A DNA stretch of 64,000 bases, taken from sequence record PV764603.1; one strand, written 5' to 3'. The notes under the pieces are model-generated. The model was not told where the DNA came from and did not search any database. It was given only the letters and a program-made list of their open reading frames with translations. Shown piece after piece: positions 791 through 51,577 of the stretch. A program made the translations under genes and the position numbers. How positions within the stretch are numbered: position 1 is the stretch's first letter; each line of letters begins with the position of its first letter.

Positions 791-1474
791 TTATGCGTTG
801 ATGGCTATGTAAGCCGAGGTTGGGTTGCACGGTTGCAGGTCGTACCCATTGACGTAGTAGGTACGGGTCCAGAAAGTACGGTCAAGCTGAGGGACAGCAA
901 TCCAGCAGTCAACATCAACTACCGGCTTGGAGAAAGCAACCTCAAACCGTTCACGCTTGATGGTCAAGGTTGGTTGGAGCGGTACGCCCGAAGAGCGAGC
1001 GTATACAGCGAGGTCACGATTGTGTTGAGCCACCAACCGTGAGTACCTGGTACTTGTGAAACGTTGTGCGTGTCCGGGCCCACCGTTGTAGCACACAAGT
1101 GCTCTCTGGCTGTGACCGAAGGTATCGACACACTCACGTAGATAAAGAGCAGCTACTCGCAACCCCAATTCAGTGTCGTTGCGTAGACGGGCTGGCGTTA
1201 TCGTCCCGAGTTCTGGATGCCGCGTAGCGACATACTTTGCCGTAGCAAGGTTTACGTGCCCGACGCCGAAGTGCTTGCCTCCTGCGTCTGTCGTTACCCT
1301 GCCCAGCGAGGACTCTCGGAAGACGAGTCCGGGCAGCATGTCCGAAACTCCATACTCCGCGCCAATCTGTGCAGACAGGTGCAGTACGGTTTGCTGTTTC
1401 GGGGTAAGCTTTAGTGCCATCGCCTCTGACGCGAACGGCACAAACATAAGAAGCATAGCGAGAATGAAGCGCAT
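791..1474 (-). CDS. SLT-family lytic transglycosylase with N-terminal signal peptide
   Basis: Motifs LVFRESS (catalytic Glu), FGVGHVN, AALYLREC, ALVCYNGGPG; start MRFILAMLLMFVPFASEAMA at 1474 after a GAGG RBS. Confidence 0.85.
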   Translation of the reverse strand: MRFILAMLLMFVPFASEAMALKLTPKQQTVLHLSAQIGAEYGVSDMLPGLVFRESSLGRVTTDAGGKHFGVGHVNLATAKYVATRHPELGTITPARLRNDTELGLRVAALYLRECVDTFGHSQRALVCYNGGPGHAQRFTSTRYSRLVAQHNRDLAVYARSSGVPLQPTLTIKRERFEVAFSKPVVDVDCWIAVPQLDRTFWTRTYYVNGYDLQPCNPTSAYIAINA

Positions 1475-1577
1475 GTTAACCTCATGGGTGCGGTGGCCCT
1501 GACTGTCCTTTATGTCCGGGTCACATTGTCTACTCAAGCTCCGCCGGTGTACGGCTGTAGAGGATTAATGGGAAGGG

Positions 1578-1910
1578 TTAGAAGATGGTTACAGCAAGAA
1601 CGGCCCACATGACTTTACACAACACATGCAAACCTTGATCCACGTTGATTCCGATTAAGCGTTCGCTCTTGAGAAAATCAATTGCGAAGTGACACGCAGT
1701 TTCCAGTACACCCAGCAGTGCGGAGCCTGTTATGAGAGCAACCGCACCACCATGAATCATGGCGTGTGCAGTCAGCGCATGCCACCAAGGCACGTGCTTG
1801 TCTCCAGTACGTCTACACTTGTTTGCTGCGATGAATGGTCCCTGTAATGGATAGTCGGCCAAGGCATGACCAACTATCAGGAAGAACAGAATGGATAGGA
1901 ACTCGGTCAA
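1578..1910 (-). CDS. DUF3307-like membrane protein
   Basis: GHALADYPLQ...LTAHAMIHGG...HFAIDFLK pattern, hydrophobic. Confidence 0.8.
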   Translation of the reverse strand: MTEFLSILFFLIVGHALADYPLQGPFIAANKCRRTGDKHVPWWHALTAHAMIHGGAVALITGSALLGVLETACHFAIDFLKSERLIGINVDQGLHVLCKVMWAVLAVTIF

Positions 1911-8723: not shown

Positions 8724-9293
8724 TCACTTCCTCTTGGCGTAGTAGCGATGCCCCTTGTGGGGGAATGCGTTGTGGCCGAACGGATGGATGGTGTCCAACT
8801 CGTAGCCGGAACTATGGCGATAGATGCGCGTCGTTTCGTGTGTCGAAGTGGTTTTCGTTACGCGGTCCACATACACACGTTGATCGTCCATCAATGCCTC
8901 GCGCACGATCTGGCGCACTTGACGCAACGTGCGAACCTTGCGGTCGATGAGGATTTCACCGAAGACTTCATACACGCGACGGCGCTTGTACTTCGGACGG
9001 TTTCGGCTGAACGATACTGCTTCCTTGAACGCTGCTTTCAACAGCGCGACCGAATCGCCGTGATGCTCCTGCGGCGACCAAAACTCAATGAAGCACCACC
9101 CGCCCTTCTCATCATAGCTTTGCAGGAAGGCGTGCGACTTTCGGTGCGCCTTGTAGTGAGGGCTCTCAATCCAGTTGTCCGTGACACTGGAACGAAGGGC
9201 AACCATTTGCTCCGGCGTGCCGTTCTCAACGACGACGCCCCAATTCTTGTCAGCGAACGGCTTGCAGTAGGTGAAGGTCGGGCGACGGCTCAT
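8724..9293 (-). CDS. hypothetical protein (about 189 aa)
   Basis: Start MSRRPT at 9293 in ATGA overlap, AGGAG RBS. Confidence 0.65.
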   Translation of the reverse strand: MSRRPTFTYCKPFADKNWGVVVENGTPEQMVALRSSVTDNWIESPHYKAHRKSHAFLQSYDEKGGWCFIEFWSPQEHHGDSVALLKAAFKEAVSFSRNRPKYKRRRVYEVFGEILIDRKVRTLRQVRQIVREALMDDQRVYVDRVTKTTSTHETTRIYRHSSGYELDTIHPFGHNAFPHKGHRYYAKRK

Positions 9294-9514
9294 CCTGTGA
9301 AACTCCTTTTCATCAAATCGCGTGGGTTCGGATACTGCTGTTTCAACTTGTGCGTTCGCATAGCATCCCGATCCTGCCGGATGAGTTGCTTCGCTTTGTC
9401 TTTCACCGTCAGCTGCCAATCGCCCGCCGCACGCAACCCACCTTTCACGCTCAGGGATCGCAGCAGGGATTGTGTGGCGTTGGTGTTGGTGATTGCAACG
9501 ATGGGGAGGATCAT
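9290..9514 (-). CDS. small hypothetical protein
   Basis: ATG at 9514 in ATGA overlap. Confidence 0.55.
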   Translation of the reverse strand: MILPIVAITNTNATQSLLRSLSVKGGLRAAGDWQLTVKDKAKQLIRQDRDAMRTHKLKQQYPNPRDLMKRSFTG

Positions 9515-9894
9515 TTTGTATCCCTCGGATAGTGGTAACCGAAGAACCACACCGGGTAGCCATTGGACTGGTTGGTGTAGTGAGTGATCTTGGTCAGTAC
9601 GAGTTCGGGCTGATCGAAATACAACCGCAGGAACTCTTCGATTTGGGCCGGAGTGCGCTGAGGGCTATAGAAATACTGACCCGAGTTGCCCCACACTTTC
9701 TTAGCGCAGCGGTCGAATTTGCTGCTATCCCACGAGAACATGCGGTCACTATATGCGCCGCTGTTGATGTGGGTTTCCAAAACGTCCACATGATTCTGGA
9801 ATTGAACACGACCACCGAATTCATCGGTAAGCTCTTGGAACTGACCACCTACGAAGACGAAGGTGTGGTGACCGAACTGATTATCCAGCGACAT
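9511..9894 (-). CDS. hypothetical protein (127 aa)
   Basis: Coupled ORF. Confidence 0.65.
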   Translation of the reverse strand: MSLDNQFGHHTFVFVGGQFQELTDEFGGRVQFQNHVDVLETHINSGAYSDRMFSWDSSKFDRCAKKVWGNSGQYFYSPQRTPAQIEEFLRLYFDQPELVLTKITHYTNQSNGYPVWFFGYHYPRDTK

Positions 9895-35872: not shown

Positions 35873-36262
35873 ATGAACCAGTACAAGCAGCGTACCTATA
35901 TCCCGGTGACGACTGTTCCTGTGGACGTGAAGGGTAGCGAGACTGAGCAGCTGCTGGATTATCTGGCAAGCTCGATGAACAATCCTCAGTTCCGATTGTC
36001 GAAACAGATTCCTGTCAGCACTCCTGAAATGATTACTCCGAAATACGAGTTTTCGCCGGAGATCATGAGCTATGACAAGTACGGTACTGAGTATCTGTGG
36101 TGGGTGCTATGCAGGTACAACGGCATCATCCATCCCCTCCACCCCATCCTCGGCTTCGTCGCTGGTAATTGGGTCAACGTTCCTAGCGCTGCTGACGTTA
36201 CGCAGTGGCTCAAGAACATCGGTCTTGACCAGCAACAAATTTCCCGTCTAGTAAGGGTCTAA
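35873..36262 (+). CDS. baseplate wedge protein (gp53/LysM-like)
   Basis: PEIMSYDKYGTEYLWWVLCRYNGIIHP pattern. Confidence 0.75.
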   Translation: MNQYKQRTYIPVTTVPVDVKGSETEQLLDYLASSMNNPQFRLSKQIPVSTPEMITPKYEFSPEIMSYDKYGTEYLWWVLCRYNGIIHPLHPILGFVAGNWVNVPSAADVTQWLKNIGLDQQQISRLVRV

Positions 36263-36263
36263 C

Positions 36264-37391
36264 ATGCTCAAGTATGACAACGGGCTGGAATTGGACGTTA
36301 CCATTGGTGGCGTCCAGCTTCCTGACAATGAGTTCTCGTTTCACCACCTGTCCCTAGTCAGTGACACTCGGTATTTCTTGCCGATGATGTTCATGCAGTT
36401 CGCTGACCAAGGCGACATTCTTCGGAAGGCTGGCGTTACCCTGTTTGACGCCGTACCCATTGTCATTAGCTTGGGCACTGGCGATCAGAAAAGGAACTAC
36501 GAGTTCCGCCTCCACCGTCCTGAGCAAGTCACCAGCGGCAACCTGACCATCTACAAAATGAGCGGGTATCTAGATGCCCCCAAGTACCTAGCTGAGTCTC
36601 AGAACATTGGCTACACGGGTACTAGCTCTGAAATCATCAGTCAAATCGGTGAACGTAGCGGCCTCACGCCACAGGTTGAGGATACCACCGACAACCAACG
36701 ATGGTGGCAGGCCAACCGCCGCAATGCTGAGTTCGTTCGCTACATGGCCCAGCATGGATACAAGTCAGATGATTCCCTCATGTGTACGGGTGTGCGCTTC
36801 GACCGCTCCTTGCGATACATGGACCTGAACGCCATCGAGCCGCGAGATATGTGGCTGAGTTACACAAAGATGGACCAAAACGTCGTTACAATCGTTGACC
36901 ACCGATTTAACGATCCTATGGGTGGGAATAATTTGATTAGGGGATACAGGAGTCGCACGGTAGATCAGAAGGTCAACACTCCTGACACCAACTACAACGA
37001 CACCACCATCAATCCCCGTGCTTCTACCGTGAGCATGAACCTGGACCTACAATCGCAGATTCAGCGAGGCAAGGTCGAGTTCTCACCGCTGTACGCTCCG
37101 GGTCAGGTGCACGATAACTGGGCCAAGGCCCGCCACCAAAACCTGCGCGGTCGCTACCTCAACAACTCGATCTGCGTTGCGCTGACCACTAACCAATCTA
37201 ATCTGGACCTGTTTGATAGCGTCAAGATCGACAGTAGCTTGTCGATCCGAGACAACACTATCGGTGACGGCCAGAACAACAGCCGGGAAGGTCAGTACAT
37301 CGTGGCAGGCAAGGAAATCATGCTTGTCGGTCGCAACTACGGCGAGAAGATCAAACTGATGCGCGGCGGTATGAACGGAGAGAGTCAATGA
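36264..37391 (+). CDS. baseplate hub protein (gp27/gpD-like)
   Basis: 375 aa between the gp53-like and spike genes; GYTGTSSEIISQI, EGQYIVAG motifs. Confidence 0.7.
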   Translation: MLKYDNGLELDVTIGGVQLPDNEFSFHHLSLVSDTRYFLPMMFMQFADQGDILRKAGVTLFDAVPIVISLGTGDQKRNYEFRLHRPEQVTSGNLTIYKMSGYLDAPKYLAESQNIGYTGTSSEIISQIGERSGLTPQVEDTTDNQRWWQANRRNAEFVRYMAQHGYKSDDSLMCTGVRFDRSLRYMDLNAIEPRDMWLSYTKMDQNVVTIVDHRFNDPMGGNNLIRGYRSRTVDQKVNTPDTNYNDTTINPRASTVSMNLDLQSQIQRGKVEFSPLYAPGQVHDNWAKARHQNLRGRYLNNSICVALTTNQSNLDLFDSVKIDSSLSIRDNTIGDGQNNSREGQYIVAGKEIMLVGRNYGEKIKLMRGGMNGESQ

Positions 37392-38125
37392 GTATCGGTA
37401 TGGGCGTCCGTGAATCGGACAGCTACAAGGGCATTATTTTCTATGGCAAGGTAGTGGACAACAATGACCCCGAACAGCTACGGCGTGTACGTGTCCATAT
37501 CCCCGAGGTCTACGGTGATACCCCTCCCGAGGAATTGCCGTGGGCCTTCCCCAAATGTCCTCCTAGCGGCACTGGCCAAAGTAGCACCTTCGGTAGCTAC
37601 GGTGTGTTGGACGTAGACAGCGAAGTATGGGTGGAGTTCCAGCAAGGCGATCCCCACTTCCCTATGGTGATTGGCGTAGCCTTGCGCGCCGACCTTCGGA
37701 AGCAGACTGAGCTAGTCAACTATCCCCACCGCTACGGCCTTGACGATTCCAAGGGTAACTGGATCATCGTTGACAAGCTGACAGGCGACGTGGAGATTGG
37801 CCACTTCTCTGATACCCGTGTTCGCATCGAGCCTAACGGCAACCTGCACATCACTTCGGTAGCCAATCAAACGATCACGGTTGAACAGAATCAAGAGACC
37901 GAAATCAAGGGCAACGCTACAGTGCAGGTGAAAGGTAACGTCAACGTCACCGTGAACGGCAATGCGGAAATGAAGGTCGATGGGGCTATGAAGGCTAACA
38001 TCGGTCAGAACCTCCAAGCTACTGTGGGTGGTAGTGCCACTGCCCAGGTTACTGGTCCTGCAACTATCAATTCAGCAGTCAAGATTTCGCTCAACGCACC
38101 AACGGTAAGTATCAACGGAGCATAA
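37388..38125 (+). CDS. central spike protein (gp5 OB-fold / gpV-like)
   Basis: GKVVDNNDPEQLRRVRVHIP, VWVEFQQGDPHFP, C-terminal beta-helix repeats (VKGNVNVTVNGN). Confidence 0.9.
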   Translation: MSIGMGVRESDSYKGIIFYGKVVDNNDPEQLRRVRVHIPEVYGDTPPEELPWAFPKCPPSGTGQSSTFGSYGVLDVDSEVWVEFQQGDPHFPMVIGVALRADLRKQTELVNYPHRYGLDDSKGNWIIVDKLTGDVEIGHFSDTRVRIEPNGNLHITSVANQTITVEQNQETEIKGNATVQVKGNVNVTVNGNAEMKVDGAMKANIGQNLQATVGGSATAQVTGPATINSAVKISLNAPTVSINGA

Positions 38126-38126
38126 G

Positions 38127-39059
38127 ATGGGAACGATCACCATTTCAGTGACAGAGCCTTTGCCTACGTTCGACAGTCTGTATCAGGCAATGCTCCCGAA
38201 TCTGACGTTCCCGCCAACCGGGTTCCAGTGGCCTCCCGCCCTCCCCGGCATCCCTACCATGTTCCCTTCTATCAGCTGCCCTAACATGAGTGGCGTCATG
38301 GCAATGGGCCAGCTGATGACCGAACAGCTGCTTACGTCTGCGTTCATGATGATTAAGCCTATCTCGGAATTCCTAGGCTTGGCAATGTCTGCCATTCCCA
38401 AGATTCCCATCCTGAACATTGGCGTAGACCAGCTGCTAACTATGTCGGGTGACGATTTGATCGCGGCAGTAAAAGGCGCAATGCCTTCGCTACCTAATCT
38501 CTATTTCTCTCTCGACATACCGGACATCAACATCGTGCAGTGGCTGACGCAGCTGAAGTCTAGCTATCTAATGTCGCTAGCTGGATACTTGCAAAACATC
38601 ATCAAGCAGGTGACAGACAAGATCAAAATTCCGGGCATGCCCACGTTGCCTACCATCCCCACGATGGAGGACGTGAAGCAAATGCTGATAGATCAGATTC
38701 CTCCTCCGATCAATGACCTTCGCAACGTTGACCTCAACGCGCTGTTGGCCAACATCAGCATCCCAGGCATCCCCTTCGATTTCTCGTTGCCATCGCCTTT
38801 TATCCCCAACATTTCGATGCCTGAGATTGATTTCAACGAAATGATTTCGGGGCTGTACAATAGCATCGTCATGATGCCGATGAAGACAATGCAGGACTTC
38901 ATCATGGACAAACTAAGTAGTGTGATTTCCCTCCAGCTGCCTACGCTGGTTTTGGTCATTCCCACTATTGAAATCCCCATTCCGGAAATCCCCATCCCTG
39001 TTATCCCGCCACTGCCTAGCATCCCGGACCTGCCTCCGCTCACCATTCGAGGCCCTTGA
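38127..39059 (+). CDS. Pro/Ile/Met/Leu-rich hypothetical protein
   Basis: 310 aa with many xP repeats (IPTIEIPIPEIPIPVIPPLPSIPDLPP). Confidence 0.75.
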   Translation: MGTITISVTEPLPTFDSLYQAMLPNLTFPPTGFQWPPALPGIPTMFPSISCPNMSGVMAMGQLMTEQLLTSAFMMIKPISEFLGLAMSAIPKIPILNIGVDQLLTMSGDDLIAAVKGAMPSLPNLYFSLDIPDINIVQWLTQLKSSYLMSLAGYLQNIIKQVTDKIKIPGMPTLPTIPTMEDVKQMLIDQIPPPINDLRNVDLNALLANISIPGIPFDFSLPSPFIPNISMPEIDFNEMISGLYNSIVMMPMKTMQDFIMDKLSSVISLQLPTLVLVIPTIEIPIPEIPIPVIPPLPSIPDLPPLTIRGP

Positions 39060-39060
39060 A

Positions 39061-40002
39061 ATGCCTGTATCTAATCCACCTACCTTGTTGAGTGTCATTG
39101 CAGAGTTCGGAGGCCCTAACAATCTTGGGGCCTATTACCGCAAAGGTCCATACGTACCTGACGGTCCTCCGCAGAATGCCAACATCAGTGATACGCCGGG
39201 CGGTCTTCGTCTCAGTCAGTTTGCGGGTGCGGTCAAGTACAATCTCAGTGCGTCCCTGAATCGCACGACCGCCAACACCAGTGGTAGTGGCAACAGCCAG
39301 TCGGGACGTGTCCTAACTCCACAGCTGATTGTTTACCCCGTTAACGGCAGCGGCAACTACAGCTACTACTGGAACTACACCGCAGGCGTCCCTGTTAGCG
39401 GAAATACCAGTAGTACGTTCCAGCTGTACGCTGATCTCAACAATGGTCAGAACATTTCTGGCAACGGTAACTGCGTGGTTACCGATAACGTCACTGGTCA
39501 GAATGCGATCCCTAGCTTTACGTTCTACCTAAGCTGGACGTATGAACGCCCACCCACCTGTGTTGTCATGGAAGCATACCTGCACGATGGAAAGCAGGCA
39601 GGCATGTACAACTCCAACGATCCTCTGCTGTTGGTCGATCCATACGCAAGGACTTCGGAGACGCTGAACATCGTAGATGCGCAGACCTTCACCCGAGAGT
39701 GTGTGACCTTGGTTACTGCCAATGGCTCACGCCTAACGTGCTCCACCACTGCACCTATTCCAGTCAAAGCCGACTCGGAAACGCTGGTTCGTGCGGTGGA
39801 TGCTCTAGGCCACCACGTTGCTACTACCACACGCCCTAACGACGTGATCCCATCGGTCACTTGGGATAAGGTAGTGCGTGTGCTGCCTGCTGGTGAGCGT
39901 GCTGTCCGCAATATCTACATCTACGACAAGTGCTTCTGGGCTTCGGATGACAATCGTTCGTTCATCCTCCATCACAACACGACTGGTAAGCAGATCATAT
40001 GA
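39061..40002 (+). CDS. short fibre-like virion protein with C-terminal Hint domain
   Basis: N-terminal module shared with 40615; Hint from CVVME (39559) to ILHHN (39978) followed by TTGKQII. Confidence 0.75.
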   Translation: MPVSNPPTLLSVIAEFGGPNNLGAYYRKGPYVPDGPPQNANISDTPGGLRLSQFAGAVKYNLSASLNRTTANTSGSGNSQSGRVLTPQLIVYPVNGSGNYSYYWNYTAGVPVSGNTSSTFQLYADLNNGQNISGNGNCVVTDNVTGQNAIPSFTFYLSWTYERPPTCVVMEAYLHDGKQAGMYNSNDPLLLVDPYARTSETLNIVDAQTFTRECVTLVTANGSRLTCSTTAPIPVKADSETLVRAVDALGHHVATTTRPNDVIPSVTWDKVVRVLPAGERAVRNIYIYDKCFWASDDNRSFILHHNTTGKQII

Positions 40003-40604
40003 TCGTCAACAAAGAACCACGCACCGCTACTCCGATGAATTGGTTGCCTACGTACTACCTCAGTCGGATGTTTAACGCAGAAGAGTGCGCCACCATCATC
40101 AAGGAGTCAGAGGACTCCGGACTGTTTGTGCAAGGCCGCACCATTGGCGACAATAACGTGACTGTAACAGAGCAAGGCCGTCAGGTGGCCATTATCCGAC
40201 TGGCTGGAGGTACGCTGTACGAAATGATGCGCCAACGGATACTGGAACGGCTGCCTGACCTAAACTCCTGCTATCAGTTTGAACTGTTCGGCGCAGATGA
40301 AGTCTTCAAGGAAATCCATATCCTGAAGTACGTGGAAGGTAATTTCCACGGTGAACATTTGGACCTCGCCGGTTACGAGGAAATGTGCAACCGGAAGCTC
40401 AGCCTCATCGTCCAGTTGAATCCGGATTACGAGGGCGGTGAATTAGTCCTCTACAACTCTTACCCCGAGAAACCTCTGACCAATAGCAAGCAGGCTGGCG
40501 ACGCAGTGGTATTCCCCGCATGGATGCCGCACGAAGTAAGACCTGTTGACTACGGGACTAGGTACGTTCTTGTGGTTTGGTTGCGAGGCCCTAAATTTAG
40601 ATAG
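39999..40604 (+). CDS. 2OG-Fe(II) oxygenase (prolyl 4-hydroxylase/PKHD-like)
   Basis: LKYVEGNFHGEHLD (HxD), RKLSLIVQLN, YEGGEL, GDAVVFPAWMPHEVRPV..GTRYVLVVW. Confidence 0.93.
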   Translation: MIVNKEPRTATPMNWLPTYYLSRMFNAEECATIIKESEDSGLFVQGRTIGDNNVTVTEQGRQVAIIRLAGGTLYEMMRQRILERLPDLNSCYQFELFGADEVFKEIHILKYVEGNFHGEHLDLAGYEEMCNRKLSLIVQLNPDYEGGELVLYNSYPEKPLTNSKQAGDAVVFPAWMPHEVRPVDYGTRYVLVVWLRGPKFR

Positions 40605-40614
40605 GGAGGTACTC

Positions 40615-41202
40615 ATGGCCGTATCAAACCCACCAACACTGGTGAGCGTGCGTAACGAATTCGGTGGCAACGGAAATCTCCGTGCCTACACACGAGGCGG
40701 TGGCCTTGTTCCAGATGGGCCTGCGCAGAATGCGAACATCAGCAAAACTCCGGACGGTTTGCGGCTTAGTCAATTTGCAGGAGCAACTAAAATCACTGCA
40801 CAGTTGACCGACATTTATGCGCAGCAGTCCTACTACGGACAATCGGGTCAAGACAACACTGCTTCTGCCACCATCCAGTTTAGTACCGATGGCAACATCT
40901 ACTACACATGGGGTATGGGAGCTTTGCAGACGTACCGATGGTTGGCTGGCGGTAATGCAAGTGATTTTGACGTAGAAGGATTTAATCAGCAGATCGCAGG
41001 TAACGGTCAAACCTCGGGCACGATGAATCGTCAGAATTTGGGTGGTTCTCCCCGATGGTCATGTTCCGCTGCAACCCGATTTGGTTTTGTTGATTCTTCC
41101 ATGTCATTTGGCTGCCGAATCTACCAAGCGGGTACTGGTAACGTTATCGCTACAGCGAATTTCAGTATTTATGCCGCCGCCTCAGATGGTAGCATCGGAT
41201 AG
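40615..41202 (+). CDS. short fibre-like virion protein, paralogue of 39061 N-terminus
   Basis: 44 of the first 59 aa identical to the 39061 protein; Gly/Asn/Ser-rich beta body. Confidence 0.75.
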   Translation: MAVSNPPTLVSVRNEFGGNGNLRAYTRGGGLVPDGPAQNANISKTPDGLRLSQFAGATKITAQLTDIYAQQSYYGQSGQDNTASATIQFSTDGNIYYTWGMGALQTYRWLAGGNASDFDVEGFNQQIAGNGQTSGTMNRQNLGGSPRWSCSAATRFGFVDSSMSFGCRIYQAGTGNVIATANFSIYAAASDGSIG

Positions 41203-41257
41203 CAACTCCATCTTCTAGTAACAACCAAAACGTTTGACACAACAAGGGAGAAGAAAC

Positions 41258-41935
41258 ATGTTCCAAGAAAGGGACCAAACTACAGCCAAATGGAATCCCC
41301 TCTGCCACGAACAGGTCAACTTGATTAACTCTTCGCTGATCGCGCGCCTCAAGGCGAAGGCAGATGAGTATCCGGTTAACCCTTACGGTTGTGGATGGGA
41401 TAGTGGCGTTCCACTGGACCTGACTGCACCGACGGCCAGTGACGCGTCGCCAGAAGCTGTGTTGATTCACGATACCCGAACGCTCATCGCAGAATGCGTC
41501 CATCGCCTATCGGGCTTCTATCCATTCGATTTGTATTTCAAGGATGCGGCCTTTGTTGTTCCTGCACCGCAACCTGCTTCGGTACGCTTGGTGCGACTCG
41601 CTATGGGTGCGAAGCTTAATCCGCCCCACGCTGGTACGGCGGTTGCTCCCGGCGCCACGAATCGCATTGATCTGAATACGCATAGTCAGGCTCATCAGAA
41701 GATTCATATGATGATCCCGCTCTCTGCTTACGAAGGTAACGACGTGTTCTTCCCCTTCTTCGATCCGAACTTGCAGGAATGGAAAGACGTGTCGCCCACC
41801 ATCACTAACGCACGGGCTGACTGGACAGGCATCACGTTGTCATGGCCTGCGTGGCGGTTGTGTAGGTTCAGTCCCGTCGAGGACGGCGAAGCCTACCTCC
41901 TGCTAGTCACGTTGTACGGACCTCGCTTCCAGTAA
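41258..41935 (+). CDS. putative Asp/Asn beta-hydroxylase-like (DSBH) protein
   Basis: VRLVRLAMGAKLNPPH...KIHMMIPL resembles the R.L.pG..I.PH...R.H.PL pattern of that family; second iron ligand unclear. Confidence 0.45.
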   Translation: MFQERDQTTAKWNPLCHEQVNLINSSLIARLKAKADEYPVNPYGCGWDSGVPLDLTAPTASDASPEAVLIHDTRTLIAECVHRLSGFYPFDLYFKDAAFVVPAPQPASVRLVRLAMGAKLNPPHAGTAVAPGATNRIDLNTHSQAHQKIHMMIPLSAYEGNDVFFPFFDPNLQEWKDVSPTITNARADWTGITLSWPAWRLCRFSPVEDGEAYLLLVTLYGPRFQ

Positions 41936-41961
41936 GTGCCCACATCTAATTCGGAACCAAC

Positions 41962-42366
41962 ATGGCAACCACCAACAACATCCTGTTTAGTGACTTCAAC
42001 ACGCTAGTCGGGTTGAATAACAAGCAAGCCATCGTCATCAATGATGATGCAGTTGCCAATGTGGTGCTCAACATTGTTCTGATCCAGAAGCGCAGCCGTA
42101 AGTTTCGGATTGGGTATGGAGCATCAAGTCACTTCTTCCTGCAAAAGCAGGTGACTGCTGAGAACGCGGAGAAGTACAGGATGACCCTCTACCAAGACCT
42201 GACCAAATGGGCCGGGTCTGTAGCCAAGTTTGATATGGCGGGCATCCAAGTGAAGCCTCTCCAGAATTACGACGGTTACGGAGTGGTCATCCTGTACAAG
42301 TCCAACCTTTCGGGTTACTACAATCAGGTTTCAGTCCAGCTGCCGTCCACCTCGGTGGCACGCTAA
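41962..42366 (+). CDS. baseplate wedge protein (gp25-like)
   Basis: AIVINDDAVANVVLNIVLIQKRSRKFRIGYGA; precedes the gp6-like gene. Confidence 0.75.
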   Translation: MATTNNILFSDFNTLVGLNNKQAIVINDDAVANVVLNIVLIQKRSRKFRIGYGASSHFFLQKQVTAENAEKYRMTLYQDLTKWAGSVAKFDMAGIQVKPLQNYDGYGVVILYKSNLSGYYNQVSVQLPSTSVAR

Positions 42367-42549
42367 TACCGAAAATAGGGCCAAAATAGGCCCACAGCAC
42401 CCTACCCACAGGGCGCCAAATTTAGAGGCTCCAGCTTCCATCTACGACCCCAATCCTTGCGTCAAAACGCATAGTTGGGGCGTAGATTTTGGCTACATTT
42501 TCCACTCCCCAACCCTCATTTTCCTATGGCCACTGACCGGAATTCAACC

Positions 42550-44307
42550 ATGACAACTGTAACCGCGTTGTCCAATATCCGCCCTGACTTCGATGACATT
42601 GCAGCACAGCTGGGATCGAGTCTGACGCGCAAGGCGAACTGGGCTCCGCTGCTTCCTACTCAGACTGCAAGCCTCTTGATTGAAGGCGTGGCCGCCGCCA
42701 CTGCGTTCCTGCAAACCGGTGTGCAGAACAGCTTTGAAGAAACGTTCCCTCAGACCGCCCGTATGCCTTCGAGCCTGCGGGCGTCTGCGCGTCGGCTCGG
42801 TGTCCGTCTGACGCGCAAGTCCCCTGCACAGACTCGGGTACGGCTCACGCGAGCCACCGCAGCCACGTCCGTCCTGATCCCTGAGTTCTCGGCCTTCCAA
42901 GCGCCGGGTGTGTCTCTGTTCAACCGCTCTGCCATACTGTTCCCCGTCGGTACCCTCTCCGCTGAATTCGACTTGTACGAAGGCTTTATCACTCAGGTTT
43001 CGTACACGGGTCAAGGTGCTGACAGTCAGATGATCGTTGTATCTGTCCCCGGCTTCACCATCAGCAACATGGACGTGCGGGTCACTGTCAGTGGCCGTCC
43101 GCTGCAAGTGGTGACTGATGGCATCTGGCACTACCCCATCACGAACAGTGGCGATCCTAACTACGTGGTATCGGACAACACGCTGCCTACGGGCGAGCTT
43201 CTGCTTGAGTTCGGTAACACTCAGTTCGGCATGATCCCTCAGCGTGGTGCGCAGATTCTTGTGTCCTATGCTGTGACCAATGGTACCTCCGGCAACAACG
43301 TACAGTTTGAGAATCAGCGCATCACGTACTCGGCCAACGGTGTTGAGTTCACTGGCAGCGCGCTTACTCCACTCACCGGAGGTACTGACGAACTTGACGC
43401 AGAGCAGTACCGCGATAGTCCGTTGATCTACGCGTCCTACGAGCGCGCGGTTGCTATTCCAGACATGCCTGCTATTGCTACGAAGTATCCCGGCGTTGTC
43501 GATGCCATCTTCCTTGGTCAGAAGGACATTGCTCCGAATCTCAAGGAATTCATGAACGTTGTCTACACCTACGTTCTGATGGATACGGGTTCTCAGATTT
43601 CTGCTACGCAGTACACGGACTTCCTCAAGTGGTGGCAGCCTCGCTCGATGCCCCTTGAGTACGTCCGCCAAACCGCCAAGCAAATTGCAGTAGACGTTGC
43701 GGGCACCATCTACATCACTGGTCAGGGCGATCCGGATTCCATCTTGGCCAAGGCGCGCGCAGCAGTTGCCAAACTGTTCACTGCACGCCAAGGTTACTTG
43801 GGTCGCGATCTGTACGTGGACGACCTTATTGACTCCATCCGTACTTCGGACCCTTACGTTGACCACGTTACCCTGACTTCACCCACCGCTGACGTTATCT
43901 GTAAGATCAACGCACCGCAGGCCCCTACTGTTACTCCGGCTACTGGCGGTACGCTCCCCAACGGTACGTACATCTATTCGGTGTCTGCTGTCTCCAATCT
44001 CAGCCCTGTGCAAGAAACGTTCGCTTCGGTGAATGGTGCGGTGACGCTGACGGGAACGAACAACGCCGCACGTATCAAGTGGAATGCAGTGGCAGGTGCT
44101 GTGCAATACAAGGTGTACGGGCGCACTGCTTCCCAAGAAATGTTCCTGCTTGCCACGGTCAGCGCATCTTCTGCGCTTGAATTCTTGGACACGGGTTCTG
44201 TTACTACTGGCGCTGCTGTCAACAAGATCAACACTGCGGGTATCTCTTACGTTACCCTCAACAATACGAACTTGCAGGTGGCGTTCACTGATCGAGTAGG
44301 TGTCTGA
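42550..44307 (+). CDS. baseplate wedge protein (gp6 / baseplate J-like) with FN3-like insertion
   Basis: PDFDDIAAQL, FEETFPQTARMPSSL, LTGGTDE, YERAVAIPD motifs. Confidence 0.88.
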   Translation: MTTVTALSNIRPDFDDIAAQLGSSLTRKANWAPLLPTQTASLLIEGVAAATAFLQTGVQNSFEETFPQTARMPSSLRASARRLGVRLTRKSPAQTRVRLTRATAATSVLIPEFSAFQAPGVSLFNRSAILFPVGTLSAEFDLYEGFITQVSYTGQGADSQMIVVSVPGFTISNMDVRVTVSGRPLQVVTDGIWHYPITNSGDPNYVVSDNTLPTGELLLEFGNTQFGMIPQRGAQILVSYAVTNGTSGNNVQFENQRITYSANGVEFTGSALTPLTGGTDELDAEQYRDSPLIYASYERAVAIPDMPAIATKYPGVVDAIFLGQKDIAPNLKEFMNVVYTYVLMDTGSQISATQYTDFLKWWQPRSMPLEYVRQTAKQIAVDVAGTIYITGQGDPDSILAKARAAVAKLFTARQGYLGRDLYVDDLIDSIRTSDPYVDHVTLTSPTADVICKINAPQAPTVTPATGGTLPNGTYIYSVSAVSNLSPVQETFASVNGAVTLTGTNNAARIKWNAVAGAVQYKVYGRTASQEMFLLATVSASSALEFLDTGSVTTGAAVNKINTAGISYVTLNNTNLQVAFTDRVGV

Positions 44308-47438: not shown

Positions 47439-49724
47439 ATGATTACCCATCAGGATACACTGTTCTCCAACATCCTATACGGAAATAATTGGAGTGCAGC
47501 TACCTACCAAGCCGCAAATCGGTTCACCATCCAAGGTGACAAGCGAACTTCGTATGAGGTAGGTACCCAGGTTCAGATTCTCACGTCCGCCGTAGCTACC
47601 ATGCAGTACAGCTACGTCAGTGCAGTCACATTCGCATCCAACGTCACTACGGTGACAGTCAGCGACGGCCTGTTCGCCTCGGGTCAGAAGATCAATGTTC
47701 GTGCGTCGCCGTTTGGCGCCAACAACATGCCCCTCGGCCGACGCTTCAAAGAAATCAGCGTGTTCGGTGCGAACGGTCTAACGATCTCGAATGCGAGTCC
47801 GAAGTTCACCTTGTTCGTGGAGGGCGTTGGCGCAGGCAAAGTCAACACGTTCACTTTCCAGCCGGGCTCTGACGGTATCTCGTTCAAGGTGGGACGTGAT
47901 GCGATTGGTCTCGATGCCATGCGCATCGACGCCACTTCGACTGCCATCACCAAGGTGACGTTGTTCTCGCCCCTGACCTTTGGCGCGACGTATACGGGCG
48001 CCCTGACTTCGCTGACCGACCTTCTGACGATTGGTCAATACGCACTGACCTATTCGGCTACGGGTTCTTCGACCGGCAGCAATCGTCTGTATATCTCCGG
48101 CCCTAATGGCGGCGAGTTCACCGTTGGTCCTACCAACGATGCTCAGGTATTCCGTCGTATTCGACTGCGTGCTACTGACGTTGTGGTCGAGAACAATCCC
48201 GGCGGTTCCTCGCAAGCAGGCTCGATCTGGCATAGCCTCAACTTCGATCCTGACACCCGTGTTACCAAGGGTCAGAATGGTTCTTGGATGGATTCGGCTT
48301 ACACTGCGATCAACAACCTTAACAACGCTCAGGGGTATTTCAACCAGTGGGCATCGGGCGCCGCACAGGCTCCTGTTGCAGGTTCGACGGGTGTTGTGCA
48401 AACCATGCACAGTGCGGGTGGCAACAACTTTAACCCTGTGGCTGGTGCTTCGCTGGTGCAGACGGCTTATGTCACCAATGGCACCGCACCTGCCCTGTAT
48501 GTGCGACGCAACGTAGGTGCTTCGGGTTGGTCTGCATGGACTAAGCTGTATACCCAAGCAGATTTCTCGCTTGGCGATTACGTCAAGATCGCAGGCGGTG
48601 ATACCATCCAGTCCCCGATCACTGTACGTACTGCCTTGTCCGTTGGCACGACTGCGGATGCAACGTCCACCCTGAACTTCGGTACCTCGGCCAGTCCCAA
48701 CGGTCCTGCTGCTACCATTTCTGTTACGGGCGGCGCAGCGACCACGGGTCGTGGTGCAATGACTATCAACGCGCAGTCCATCGCGCTGCCTGCACTGAAC
48801 GTCAACGGTACGATGAACGTTTCGGGCGCTGCTTCGATGGCGGGCCCACTGACCATCACTACTGGCTCCATACTGCTGGGTAACGGCACGTATGGGGAAT
48901 CGCGTATTAGCAATACCTTCGACGACTGGTATTTGTATTCCAGTCCTACGGGACTTGGCTGGTACAGTATCAGTAAGGGTAGTGCTTTCTCACTGGACAA
49001 GAACAGCAAGGCGTTCACGTTCAATGGTGCGGGTACCATCAACGGTCAGACTACCATCAATGGTGGTCTGAACGTGGCGAGCGGTAGCGGCATCATCACT
49101 TCGGGTAACGTTGTTGGCGCTAACGGCAACTTCTCCAATGACGTGTTTGCCCCGGGTGCTTTCCGTGGCGCTCGCCTGCACATCTATGCAAACTGTATTG
49201 CCTATGGCCAGGGTTTCCTCCCTAGTTGGAACGACTACGGTGATGGCGCAACGGTCCTGACTAACGCACGCGGCGGTGGTACGGGCGGCTTCAAGTTCCG
49301 TCAGATGAACAGTGATGGCGGTGGTCAGGTCTTCCTTGCCTTCATCAACCCGAACGGTACCATCGGTTCGGCGTCGGACGAACGCATGAAGGAATTCGGT
49401 AAGGTACTCGACCTGTCTGACGCTCTTCGGTTCATCCGTGAGCAGCGAGTCAAGCACGTCAAGTGGAAGCACACCGGCGAGGAGGATATTGCGTTTGGTG
49501 CGCAGAGCATCTTCAAGACCACTAGATTCCTAGCCCACTACGACAAGGGTGCTGACTTCTGGCAGCTGTACTACCCGAAGGTAGCTCTGTACCATCACGA
49601 AGCTCTCTTCCATATCCTTGAAGTGCAGAACAATCACGAAGCCGACATTCAGATTCTGATTCGCAAGAACGAAAATCTGGAAGAGGAAGTGAAGCAGCTG
49701 CGCGAACGGTTGGATTCTCTCTAA
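47439..49724 (+). CDS. long tail fibre with knob domain and C-terminal intramolecular chaperone (peptidase S74)
   Basis: SASDERMKE cleavage motif, IAFGAQ, terminal coiled coil LEEEVKQLRERL; knob-like LYVRRN..GWSAW. Confidence 0.9.
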   Translation: MITHQDTLFSNILYGNNWSAATYQAANRFTIQGDKRTSYEVGTQVQILTSAVATMQYSYVSAVTFASNVTTVTVSDGLFASGQKINVRASPFGANNMPLGRRFKEISVFGANGLTISNASPKFTLFVEGVGAGKVNTFTFQPGSDGISFKVGRDAIGLDAMRIDATSTAITKVTLFSPLTFGATYTGALTSLTDLLTIGQYALTYSATGSSTGSNRLYISGPNGGEFTVGPTNDAQVFRRIRLRATDVVVENNPGGSSQAGSIWHSLNFDPDTRVTKGQNGSWMDSAYTAINNLNNAQGYFNQWASGAAQAPVAGSTGVVQTMHSAGGNNFNPVAGASLVQTAYVTNGTAPALYVRRNVGASGWSAWTKLYTQADFSLGDYVKIAGGDTIQSPITVRTALSVGTTADATSTLNFGTSASPNGPAATISVTGGAATTGRGAMTINAQSIALPALNVNGTMNVSGAASMAGPLTITTGSILLGNGTYGESRISNTFDDWYLYSSPTGLGWYSISKGSAFSLDKNSKAFTFNGAGTINGQTTINGGLNVASGSGIITSGNVVGANGNFSNDVFAPGAFRGARLHIYANCIAYGQGFLPSWNDYGDGATVLTNARGGGTGGFKFRQMNSDGGGQVFLAFINPNGTIGSASDERMKEFGKVLDLSDALRFIREQRVKHVKWKHTGEEDIAFGAQSIFKTTRFLAHYDKGADFWQLYYPKVALYHHEALFHILEVQNNHEADIQILIRKNENLEEEVKQLRERLDSL

Positions 49725-49766: not shown

Positions 49767-51158
49767 ATGTGGATCACCCCTCAGAATCAAACTCTTGATG
49801 ACACGTTCGATCCATACTTTCCGGGTACAACTCGGTGGTATGGTTACACCGGCATCCTCATCAACAACACGCAAGACACCTACGATCGGTACGCTCCTTT
49901 GCAGTATGGCAGGCAAGCTCCATCCACGGCGATCCTTGCGCAGAATCAGGTAGACCTGAATCAGATTTACGCAGCCCGAGGTACAGCAGGCTACCTGCAA
50001 GGTATCTCTATCCCAAATTGCTACGTGGGCTGCTCTGGCGTTACCATCAACGATCTTCTCGCTGCTCGATGCACCATCATCATCAAGAACGACGGTACGT
50101 GGCAGCAGTGGTTCTATTCCACCAACTACAAGACGGATAGCCCGGGTGCATATGCACCTCCTAATCGTGGCATCCCTCGAACCGAAACCAACTTCAGCAA
50201 CGGACGCATGAACGCCGCCGGTAACTGGGCACAGATTCCGTTCGCTGGTGTGGGTAACAACTACGAGACTTTCTGCCACGCTCCTTGGGCCCCATACGAA
50301 AGCAAGAACCCACCTGATCTAGATTGGGGTACTGCCGATCACTATAATCGGTATGATGCTGCACTCATCAACTATATCTGGCACAACTTTAAGGGCCAAG
50401 GACAGTTCGGTAGTGCTAGTGATCCATACGTGGTGCAGAACACTACACAGAACCCCAACGAAGACATTCCTGACGGTCGGGTATACCGCATCGACCGCGA
50501 CATTCGGTTCACCCTTGGCTTGACTGCACAGGGACGCAACAACGTTCGTTGGAACTACGACGACAACGGCGCTCTGTCATGGTACAACCGAGCCAACTTT
50601 TCGGTGTACATTCAGACACCCGGTGGTGGTCAGCGTGTAGGTGCCACGTGCTTGATGGCCAATGAGATTCGATGGAACGCATGGAATTGGACGGGTGGTA
50701 GCGTCGGCGGCGGTGGTGGCGGTGGTGGCGGTGGTTGCGTTGCTGCTACCAGCTATGTTGACTTCCAAAAGACCGCAGGCACTGTTGAGGCAGGCGACTA
50801 CCTCATGGGTATGACGGATGATCTGCAATTTATGGAGCTACACGTCCTGAGTGTGCGTCGTCAAGTGCAACCGTGTGTCCGACTCTACTCAAAGAGTGGC
50901 GTCACCCTTGTGTGCTCAAAGTCCACGCCGCTGACCCTACAGAACGGAGATTGCGTGCTGGCAGGCGAAGCACGAGCAGGTATCAAGCTTCCGGTACGAT
51001 TCTTCGCGGCTGATCCTGAGTGGGAAACCATCGTCAAGATCGAGGAGGTTGGCAACCGGGAAGTGATGCTCATCAACTGCGGTGGACAGAGCTATGCTGC
51101 CGGTGAGTTGCCGGGCCGCTATATCTACACCCACAACAACAACCAGCAGAAGATGTGA
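49767..51158 (+). CDS. fibre-tip/adhesin-like protein with Gly10 linker and C-terminal Hint domain
   Basis: Trp/Tyr/Asn-rich body; G10 then CVAATS (50736) ... YIYTHN (51137). Confidence 0.8.
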   Translation: MWITPQNQTLDDTFDPYFPGTTRWYGYTGILINNTQDTYDRYAPLQYGRQAPSTAILAQNQVDLNQIYAARGTAGYLQGISIPNCYVGCSGVTINDLLAARCTIIIKNDGTWQQWFYSTNYKTDSPGAYAPPNRGIPRTETNFSNGRMNAAGNWAQIPFAGVGNNYETFCHAPWAPYESKNPPDLDWGTADHYNRYDAALINYIWHNFKGQGQFGSASDPYVVQNTTQNPNEDIPDGRVYRIDRDIRFTLGLTAQGRNNVRWNYDDNGALSWYNRANFSVYIQTPGGGQRVGATCLMANEIRWNAWNWTGGSVGGGGGGGGGGCVAATSYVDFQKTAGTVEAGDYLMGMTDDLQFMELHVLSVRRQVQPCVRLYSKSGVTLVCSKSTPLTLQNGDCVLAGEARAGIKLPVRFFAADPEWETIVKIEEVGNREVMLINCGGQSYAAGELPGRYIYTHNNNQQKM

Positions 51159-51577
51159 TGATTGGTTCTGACCAACTCTCAGAAGTAGGTGTACCTGTCG
51201 GAGAGCTCTCCATTGGGAGGACTCTCGACGTATATGCGGTGGACGATCTACACTCGGTCATCCGCCTGAAAGGAACCGTCTCAAATCGGGTCCTGCGCAG
51301 TGCAGAAGTAGTAACCATCACAACTGCCTCCGGCGCTTCCGTTGTGGTGGCTGCCCAAAGTCGCCTCCCTGTCTATAGCGGACAGACAGCGCTGGCTAAG
51401 AATGTTGGTGCCAACATGATTGCTGTGATGGCCCCTAATGGCGCTTTTCGGTGGGAGCGGGTTGCCACCATCGAGGCTGGTACTGAGGCCGTAGTGGACC
51501 TCAAGTGTGAAGGCTACATAGTAGCCGGTAACGATCCTAAAACCGGGCTAATCTTGGTGTCTGGATCGCTGCCGTGA
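51155..51577 (+). CDS. stand-alone degenerate Hint-like protein
   Basis: Hint-like blocks (VGELSIG, VVTITTASGASVVVAAQSRLP, WERVATIE, VVDLKCE.YIVAG) but no N-terminal Cys/Ser and no terminal HN. Confidence 0.55.
   Translation: MMIGSDQLSEVGVPVGELSIGRTLDVYAVDDLHSVIRLKGTVSNRVLRSAEVVTITTASGASVVVAAQSRLPVYSGQTALAKNVGANMIAVMAPNGAFRWERVATIEAGTEAVVDLKCEGYIVAGNDPKTGLILVSGSLP

Follow-up and report, generated by a model that had tools for sequence, protein, structure and literature searches.

The target gene and its C-terminal Hint domain

The 64,000-nucleotide window analysed here comes from sequence record PV764603.1 (phage PhiXhv-16). At positions 39,061 to 40,002 it carries a gene, hereafter the target gene, whose protein ends in a Hint (intein-fold) domain. 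The PhiXhv phages, whose isolation host was Xanthomonas hortorum pv. vitians, are jumbo myoviruses of ~228 kb with a virulent life cycle (PMC13340338). Positions 36000-43000 of the window are 100% identical to PhiXhv-16 (160000-167000 in PV764603.1) and to PhiXhv-12, and 98.6-99.6% identical to PhiXhv-15 and Ep026/Ep032. The target protein itself is 100% identical in PhiXhv-15/16 and Ep026/Ep032. The GenBank record of PhiXhv-15 annotates the same coding sequence, and the reading frame is intact, with neither internal stops nor frameshifts. The gene and its parts are the following.

39061..40002, + strand: target gene of the baseplate/tail-fibre module, encoding a precursor of 313 amino acids (aa) and 33.8 kDa; ATG at 39061, stop at 40000-40002
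39061..39240, + strand: N-terminal module, ~aa 1-60, also found by alignment in the Hint-less paralogue at 40615..41202 and in phages LucasX and RTH11
39247..39543, + strand: middle domain, aa 63-161, an all-beta, Ig-like sandwich in the full-length structural model
39559..39978, + strand: Hint domain (predicted autoprocessing), aa 167-306, from Cys167 to Asn306, identified by structural model, Foldseek and family profile
39559..39561, + strand: codon of Cys167, domain position 1 and predicted thioester-forming nucleophile; Cys in 115/115 aligned relatives
39742..39753, + strand: block-B equivalent, Ser228-Thr-Thr-Ala231, placed by HMMER alignments
39970..39978, + strand: His304-His305-Asn306, the domain end plus an extra conserved His; Asn306 codon at 39976-39978
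39979..39999, + strand: C-flank TTGKQII, seven residues, with Thr307 at +1 and Lys310, followed directly by the stop

The AlphaFold2 (AF2) model of the full-length protein, with a predicted local distance difference test score (pLDDT) of 87.9, consists of a partly helical segment of ~60 residues, a beta sandwich and the Hint domain. We presume the N-terminal module to be the attachment region; the all-beta middle domain is the portion that would stay after processing. Residues 1-166 end ...YERPPT, directly before Cys167. Outside the Hint part, Foldseek gave weak matches only, to pilin and Ig-like structures. A first-pass annotation of this DNA, made from the letters alone, had described the first 166 residues as a fibre-like N-extein, and a small attachment module followed by an Ig-like domain is the better description. 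Its coordinates and letters, from Cys167 at 39559 to ...FILHHN followed by TTGKQII and the stop, agree with our own check of the sequence. The mini (endonuclease-free) Hint domain that it had only inferred is now borne out by AF2, by Foldseek and by the comparison of a family profile with PDB sequences.

Indeed, the assignment of the last 147 residues to a genuine Hint domain is secure. Modelled with an alignment of 56 relatives, this segment reached a pLDDT of 96.3 and a predicted template-modelling score (pTM) of 0.90. The top 50 Foldseek matches in the PDB were all of the Hint fold, with template-modelling (TM) scores of ~0.6-0.74 and E-values of 3.8e-6 to ~1e-4. The best of them included the NpuDnaB (E 3.8e-6, TM 0.71), Ssp DnaB, PhoCDC21-1, RecA and gp41-1 inteins, hedgehog (1at0/6tyy, TM 0.72-0.74), a bacterial intein-like (BIL) domain of C. 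thermocellum and the Tetrahymena BIL2. In BFVD, the five best matches were uncharacterised phage proteins (TM 0.77-0.85), terminase and ribonucleotide reductase inteins coming next. The family profile retrieved 6rpq (E 3.7e-4) and gp41-1 (E 0.16) from the PDB sequences, with the terminal His-Asn in register. Scans of the target protein by itself gave no Pfam match at E<1 over the Hint domain, only weak 'tail protein' matches in PHROGs, and nothing with phmmer against the PDB sequences. As the Hint models of Pfam-A and NCBIfam matched none of the 56 relatives at E<=0.1 (0/56), the assignment rests on the structure and on the profile-to-PDB comparison.

An exhaustive HMMER search with the 147-aa segment retrieved 324 representative clusters at E<=1e-3, 85 of them at E<=1e-10, a match far beyond chance. 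This family is unrecognised by Pfam, NCBIfam and public annotation, and it lies C-terminally on phage fibre and baseplate proteins and on some bacterial surface proteins; the family relatives are all unnamed, and in none of them does a precomputed Pfam domain cover the Hint region. The regions upstream of Cys1 are mutually unrelated: they comprise PKD arrays (P0005, P0015), collagen repeats (P0008), a Gp53-like fibre tip (P0020), a pilin-like N-terminus (P0055) and an RHS protein in which the domain lies close to the N-terminus (P0098). A Gly-rich linker precedes Cys1 in 52/112 relatives. The domain thus terminates unrelated N-parts, often after poly-Gly, which is a hallmark of BIL domains and not of inteins. 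We rejected a mobile intein for this locus, given the unrelated N-parts and the lack of both an endonuclease and a conserved host site.

Among 50,697 cultured phage records, the domain was found only in Xanthomonas jumbo phages and in Stenotrophomonas phage DLP_6. It stands at the end of the 1,824-aa 'VlrC' protein of DLP_6, with Ala at +1, and at the end of the 285-aa XacN1 ORF231, with Val at +1. The DLP_6 record (KU682439.2) gives an extra weak family match at 1356..1637 (E 4e-4), where no feature is annotated. The genomic surroundings of the relatives are phage-like: among the metagenomic ones, P0005 is followed by a DUF1353 gene and then by a GH108 lysin, and P0019 sits in a 200-kb contig with replication genes. 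A viral scan for related loci gave one locus, on a 294-kb IMG/VR contig (L008). Tandem Hint copies, 5-7 residues apart, occur in the metagenomic proteins P0005, P0008, P0030, P0055 and P0116. In the lineage of P0019, P0038 and P0072, the Hint domain is flanked by Cys-rich segments on both sides (3+7, 3+7 and 2+6 Cys, giving even totals of 10, 10 and 8). In this one lineage, the sequences hint that the two flanks end up together, as if the Hint domain split a disulfide-rich module.

Conservation at the junctions and in the C-flank

Conservation was counted on up to 155 relatives per column, 115 of them aligned at Cys1, at only ~30-45% identity; adding 166 to the domain numbering gives the protein numbering. 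Domain position 1 is Cys in 115/115 and position 2 Val in 115/118. The other end is nearly as constant, with His at position 138 (His304) in 143/153, His at position 139 (His305) in 150/153 and Asn at position 140 (Asn306) in 150/152. The residue preceding Cys1 is small, being G in 50, A in 20 and S in 15 of 112 relatives. The register of block B was taken from the HMMER alignments to 6rpq and gp41-1, which set the intein Thr/Ser-x-x-His against Ser228-x-x-Ala231. Position 61 is Cys in 145/155; position 62 (Ser228), equivalent to the intein block-B Thr/Ser, is Ser in 152/155, and position 66 is Pro in 151/155. The block-B His, which the first-pass annotation had reported missing, is indeed replaced in nearly all of the family, position 65 (Ala231) being Ala in 147/155. 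The F:13 His column (position 124) holds Arg in 59 and Lys in 48 of 153 relatives. At position 118, where inteins have the F:4 Asp, His is found in 98/155; the position varies among the orthologues and is Asn in the window protein. Judging from this pattern, we are dealing with a distinct Hint family and not with a diverged copy of a known one.

Only two copies without a tail were found, the last ones of the tandems in P0030 and P0055, and both end His-His-Asp instead of His-His-Asn, a weak observation as they form one lineage. Because Cys1 and His-Asn are invariant, the tail-less copies end in Asp and the short tail is strongly constrained, both junctions appear to be used chemically.

The reading that we favour is that the 3′ third of the target gene encodes a predicted catalytically competent, BIL-like (A-type-like) self-processing Hint module rather than a mobile intein; we hold this to be probable, with real room for doubt. 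By homology of the catalytic and junction positions, Cys167 would first attack the Thr166 carbonyl, and the resulting N-to-S acyl shift would leave the 166-aa virion protein ending in a thioester. Cyclisation of Asn306, with the help of His305, would then sever the seven-residue tail. Hydrolysis of the thioester would release a mature N-part of 17.6 kDa; alternatively, an amine of the freed tail would resolve the thioester, giving the N-part joined to the Lys-bearing peptide (18.3 kDa). Aminolysis by the freed alpha-amine has reportedly been proposed for BIL ligation, by Dassa et al. in 2004. Both outcomes would remove the 15.5-kDa Hint module from a baseplate-peripheral protein. By analogy with the chaperone domains that cleave themselves off the C-terminus of other phage fibres, the Hint module would be a transient C-terminal folding or assembly module.

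The first-pass annotation had read the His-Asn-Thr end as a canonical intein splice junction, a reading for which the +1 residue should stay Cys, Ser or Thr among homologues. It does not. Among 152 relatives, the +1 residue is L in 46, K in 22, A in 20, I in 20, M in 12, V in 10, Q in 6, T in 4, S in 4 and C in 1, with others making up the rest. Cys, Ser or Thr thus occupies the position in 9/152 (5.9%), below the combined background of 18.9% for these three residues in the same proteins (one-sided p 4e-6, indicative only as the clusters are related). In the 19 proteins with the architecture of the target (N-module, beta domain and Hint), the +1 residue is T twice, A nine times, K twice, and Q, V, I, L, M and G once each. 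Among these orthologues, Thr at +1 is thus confined to the window phage and a single relative of 57% identity. When aligned to the usual Ala-Lys tail start, the TTGK of the window protein moreover shows a two-residue insertion. On these alignments, Thr at +1 looks like a lineage-specific substitution and not like the basis of the family chemistry.

We consequently regard as unlikely a canonical class 1 splicing in cis, in which Thr307 would take the acyl group from Cys167, Asn306 would cyclise and the 166-aa N-part would be joined to TTGKQII. The residues that are formally required (Cys1, His-Asn and Thr at +1) are all present in the target and in P0002, and the natural Thr could matter, since a single change at such a position made BIL domains efficient splicers (PMC7664689). 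However, the depletion of Cys, Ser and Thr at +1 concerns the whole family, and where the N-part is the same, orthologues have A, Q, K, V, I, L, M or G at this position, so that the family does not need a +1 nucleophile. Furthermore, the Thr lies beside the insertion, the block-B and F:13 His are both missing, and there is neither a conserved host protein nor an intein-free allele with contiguous flanks. Splicing is therefore not supported as the family mechanism and could act only as a lineage-specific addition. The other suggestion of the first-pass annotation, a bias towards cleavage or trans-ligation, is the better lead, taken as cleavage or some non-canonical ligation.

The conserved feature of the C-flank is a lysine. 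It is found at +2 in 111/152 relatives, against a background of 2.6%, within +1..+2 in 128/152 and within +1..+4 in 140/152, as well as in 19/19 orthologues of the same architecture. The tail is most often 5 aa long (median 10), has at most 7 aa in 61/152 relatives and at least 40 in 36. The C-extein of seven residues that had been singled out as unusually small is indeed a very small C-flank, but it is not unusual in this family. The sequences indicate that a short, Lys-bearing tail is under selection. Inteins have no counterpart for this lysine, which could make a structural contact, take the place of the missing histidines or be the nucleophile itself.

If the last of these held, the ε-amine of Lys310 would resolve the Thr166 thioester and form an isopeptide bond with its own heptapeptide, with a neighbouring subunit or with another virion protein. 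It is lysine, and not Cys, Ser or Thr, that is conserved in the C-flank, and in another subgroup (the second Hint protein of the window, at 49767..51158, XacN1 ORF231 and DLP_6) a lysine is the penultimate residue. There is also a precedent in the Tetrahymena BIL2 (Foldseek TM 0.71), where the ε-amine of a Lys forms an isopeptide with the upstream C-terminus (PMC8616854). Nevertheless, we judge such a ligation to be improbable. The argument for it is one of conservation, and the lysine could instead have a structural role or replace the missing histidines in catalysis; the reference list of PMC8616854 cites extein residues that compensate for a lost block-B His. In addition, the pLDDT of the tail is only 54-79. 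The wider proposal would be a new Hint chemical class, in which a C-flank lysine would resolve the Cys1 thioester and provide ATP-independent covalent stapling in tail assembly, the lost histidines being part of an altered site; we put it forward as a long shot.

A separate observation concerns the long-tailed relatives (P0039, P0042, P0046, P0057, P0058, P0071; P0079, P0123, P0131), in which a Gly/Asp-rich linker is followed by a tail of 40-110 residues. These long tails are of at least two recurring types, each marked by a different conserved motif at the C-terminus that may act as a signal for secretion or anchoring.

Further Hint proteins and neighbouring genes

Downstream of the target gene, the window holds two more genes of the Hint family.

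49767..51158, + strand: second Hint-family protein, 463 aa; family hidden Markov model (HMM) E 5e-29, BLASTP against the target domain E 2e-8
51155..51577, + strand: stand-alone degenerate Hint-like protein, 140 aa; family HMM E 1e-8 over model positions 17-122

The second Hint protein has a poly-Gly linker, Cys324 (50736) and a Thr-His-Asn457 end (to 51137), after which come six residues with Asn at +1 and Lys at +5, the penultimate position. The Lys-Met end of this tail is common to XacN1 ORF231 and to the DLP_6 'VlrC' protein. The 294-kb contig L008 has the gene order of the window, with a long fibre followed, on L008, by a 450-aa poly-Gly-Hint protein that is the orthologue of 49767..51158. 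The start of the degenerate gene overlaps the stop of the second Hint gene, and its product lacks Cys1, the block-B Ser/Pro signature and the terminal His-Asn. Possible explanations are a decayed copy or a partner without catalytic function.

The presence of this degenerate protein in the same module bears on the possibility that the Hint fold of the target is simply kept on the virion, for distal binding or assembly, without any bond being broken. The family-wide absence of several canonical helper residues would fit such a non-catalytic structural domain. Nonetheless, we hold this to be very improbable: conservation is near-absolute exactly at Cys1 (115/115), at the Asn (150/152) and at the preceding His, across divergent sequences, and Asn gives way to Asp only where the tail is absent. 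If no chemistry took place at the two junctions, such a pattern would be difficult to account for.

Several points also weigh against the self-processing reading that we prefer. The domain lacks three of the four canonical helper residues (the block-B His is Ala, the F:13 His is Lys or Arg in 107/153 and F:4 is Asn), so that rates could be low or the chemistry different. The conserved Lys-bearing tail of 5-7 residues is not explained by simple cleavage alone, and the degenerate protein at 51155..51577 indicates that the fold is also used non-catalytically in this very window. Moreover, the role as an assembly module is drawn by analogy only, and no member of the family has a product known from experiment. 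The XacN1 virion proteome paper does not break its text down by ORF or list ORF231, and the PhiXhv paper contains neither proteomics nor a mention of the target gene.

The target gene belongs to an operon on the + strand that encodes baseplate and tail-fibre proteins and includes the following.

37388..38125, + strand: gp5-like spike (PF04717, E 1e-11; Gp5_trimer_C)
38127..39059, + strand: 310-aa protein with a Pro-rich C-terminus, directly upstream of the target gene
39999..40604, + strand: 2-oxoglutarate (2OG)-Fe(II) oxygenase, prolyl-hydroxylase-like (PF13640, E 2.4e-15); its ATG overlaps the target stop (ATGA)
40615..41202, + strand: paralogue of the target N-part without a Hint domain (phmmer E 6e-24, first ~140 residues shared)
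41234..41935, + strand: divergent paralogue of the oxygenase, without a Pfam match (BLASTP E 3e-6)
47439..49724, + strand: 761-aa fibre-like protein, just upstream of the second Hint gene

The ATGA overlap of start and stop suggests that the oxygenase is translationally coupled to the target gene, and the same arrangement is found in a metagenomic orthologue locus, L004 (oxygenase at 8945..9559). A 2OG-Fe(II) oxygenase is also listed at L006 5877..6830. As an oxygenase-like gene also follows the next protein with the N-terminal module, small tail proteins and oxygenase-like genes alternate in this part of the operon, and tail proteins may conceivably be hydroxylated. A general link between Hint domain and oxygenase is not supported beyond this lineage: L005, L007 and L008 lack the oxygenase, which occurs in the window and in L004 as well as near P0055. 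According to the alignment, the Hint-less paralogue at 40615..41202 merely ends earlier than the target protein. Its N-terminal 57-69 residues also occur in the Xanthomonas jumbo phages LucasX and RTH11. PhiXhv-15 has an extra 210-aa gene (L001 11352..11984) between those of the 310-aa protein and the target, which is absent from the window, PhiXhv-12 and PhiXhv-16; a comparison of its product with the oxygenase-like paralogue gave no significant similarity. We had also considered that the 761-aa fibre-like protein might end in an S74-type self-cleaving chaperone, an idea that was dropped as the Pfam and PDB searches gave no support.

The predicted processing module and known Hint systems

The known kinds of Hint domains are the inteins, hedgehog and a few BIL types. 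What is new here is an unannotated, BIL-like Hint family that is typical of phage tail proteins; in the non-subscription literature covered, we found no paper that describes the family or reports phage tail fibres with a Hint or intein-like domain. If our reading is right, the family adds an autocatalytic thioester chemistry, with a non-canonical active site and a Lys-bearing mini-tail, to the maturation of phage tails. It would then account for the unexplained C-terminal domain of ~140 aa on many fibre-like open reading frames. Annotation and proteomics would be affected, because the mature protein would be half the predicted size. The family would also provide natural examples of Hint chemistry without a block-B His or a +1 nucleophile.

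Peptidase S74-type intramolecular chaperones of phage tail spikes and fibres are likewise C-terminal, and they cleave themselves off after folding or assembly. The likeness is a functional analogy only, as their fold and chemistry are unrelated to those of the Hint family and none of our searches linked the two.

Among the Hint systems proper, the Hog domain of hedgehog (1at0, 6tyy; TM 0.72-0.74) is also a C-terminal Hint fold that releases an N-terminal functional protein through a Cys thioester, and the residue before Cys1 is often Gly in the phage family (50/112). Hog differs by its sterol-recognition region, its cholesterol acceptor and the lack of a terminal Asn step, whereas the target has seven residues after the Hint domain and its His-Asn is near-invariant in the family. 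B-type BIL domains (Pfam Hint_2) lack the terminal His-Asn that the phage family has, and none of the 56 relatives matches Hint_2. Pretoxin-HINT domains of polymorphic toxins precede a large toxin or other domain; in contrast, the phage-family domain is almost always C-terminal, with a Lys-bearing tail of 5-12 residues.

Class 1 mini-inteins (NpuDnaB 4o1r, Ssp DnaB 1mi8, gp41-1 6qaz, PhoCDC21-1 6rpq) match best in structure (E 3.8e-6 to 1e-5, TM ~0.7), and at the sequence level the profile found nothing in the PDB but 6rpq (E 3.7e-4) and gp41-1 (E 0.16). Common to these inteins and the phage family are Cys1, the block-B Ser/Thr and the terminal His-Asn; the target protein also has Thr at +1. 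However, the phage family has no conserved +1 nucleophile, no block-B His, no F:13 His and no homing endonuclease. Its domain is terminal and not inserted at a conserved site, and no intein-free allele with joined flanks was found. The family thus fails three features of canonical inteins, namely the block-B His, the conserved +1 nucleophile and the insertion into a conserved host protein.

The BIL2 of the Tetrahymena BUBL protein (6y75/6tmm) has the same fold (TM 0.71), and in it a Lys side chain resolves the thioester into an isopeptide (PMC8616854). It is the only known precedent for a possible role of the conserved tail lysine, and should this lysine be an acceptor, the phage family would give this isopeptide-forming domain its first counterpart in prokaryotes or viruses. 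The differences are marked: BIL2 shares 8% identity with the phage domain, is eukaryotic, has ubiquitin-like domains on either side and still carries the block-B His (H69).

In working logic, the closest system is that of the A-type BIL domains. These keep the His-Asn end and either cleave or splice/ligate by an alternative route (PMC7765530, PMC5874633, PMC9185962), and they are defined without an obligatory C-flank nucleophile (PMC9185962, PMC5874633). BIL domains lack a +1 nucleophile and give mainly cleaved products (PMC7664689). The phage domain resembles them in its Hint fold (C. thermocellum 2lwy, Foldseek E 8.7e-5, TM 0.68), in its N-terminal Cys and terminal His-Asn with no +1 nucleophile required, and in its location in variable, non-conserved extracellular or surface proteins and not in conserved enzymes. 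Sequence comparison does not show it to be a member: 0/56 relatives match the Pfam and NCBIfam Hint models, pretoxin-HINT included, and 2lwy is not among the matches of the phage-family profile, even at E<=10. The block-B His is Ala in the phage family, whose active-site make-up therefore differs. The outcomes reported for A-type BIL domains are N- and C-cleavage as well as a non-canonical ligation, similar to those that we predict for the phage family.

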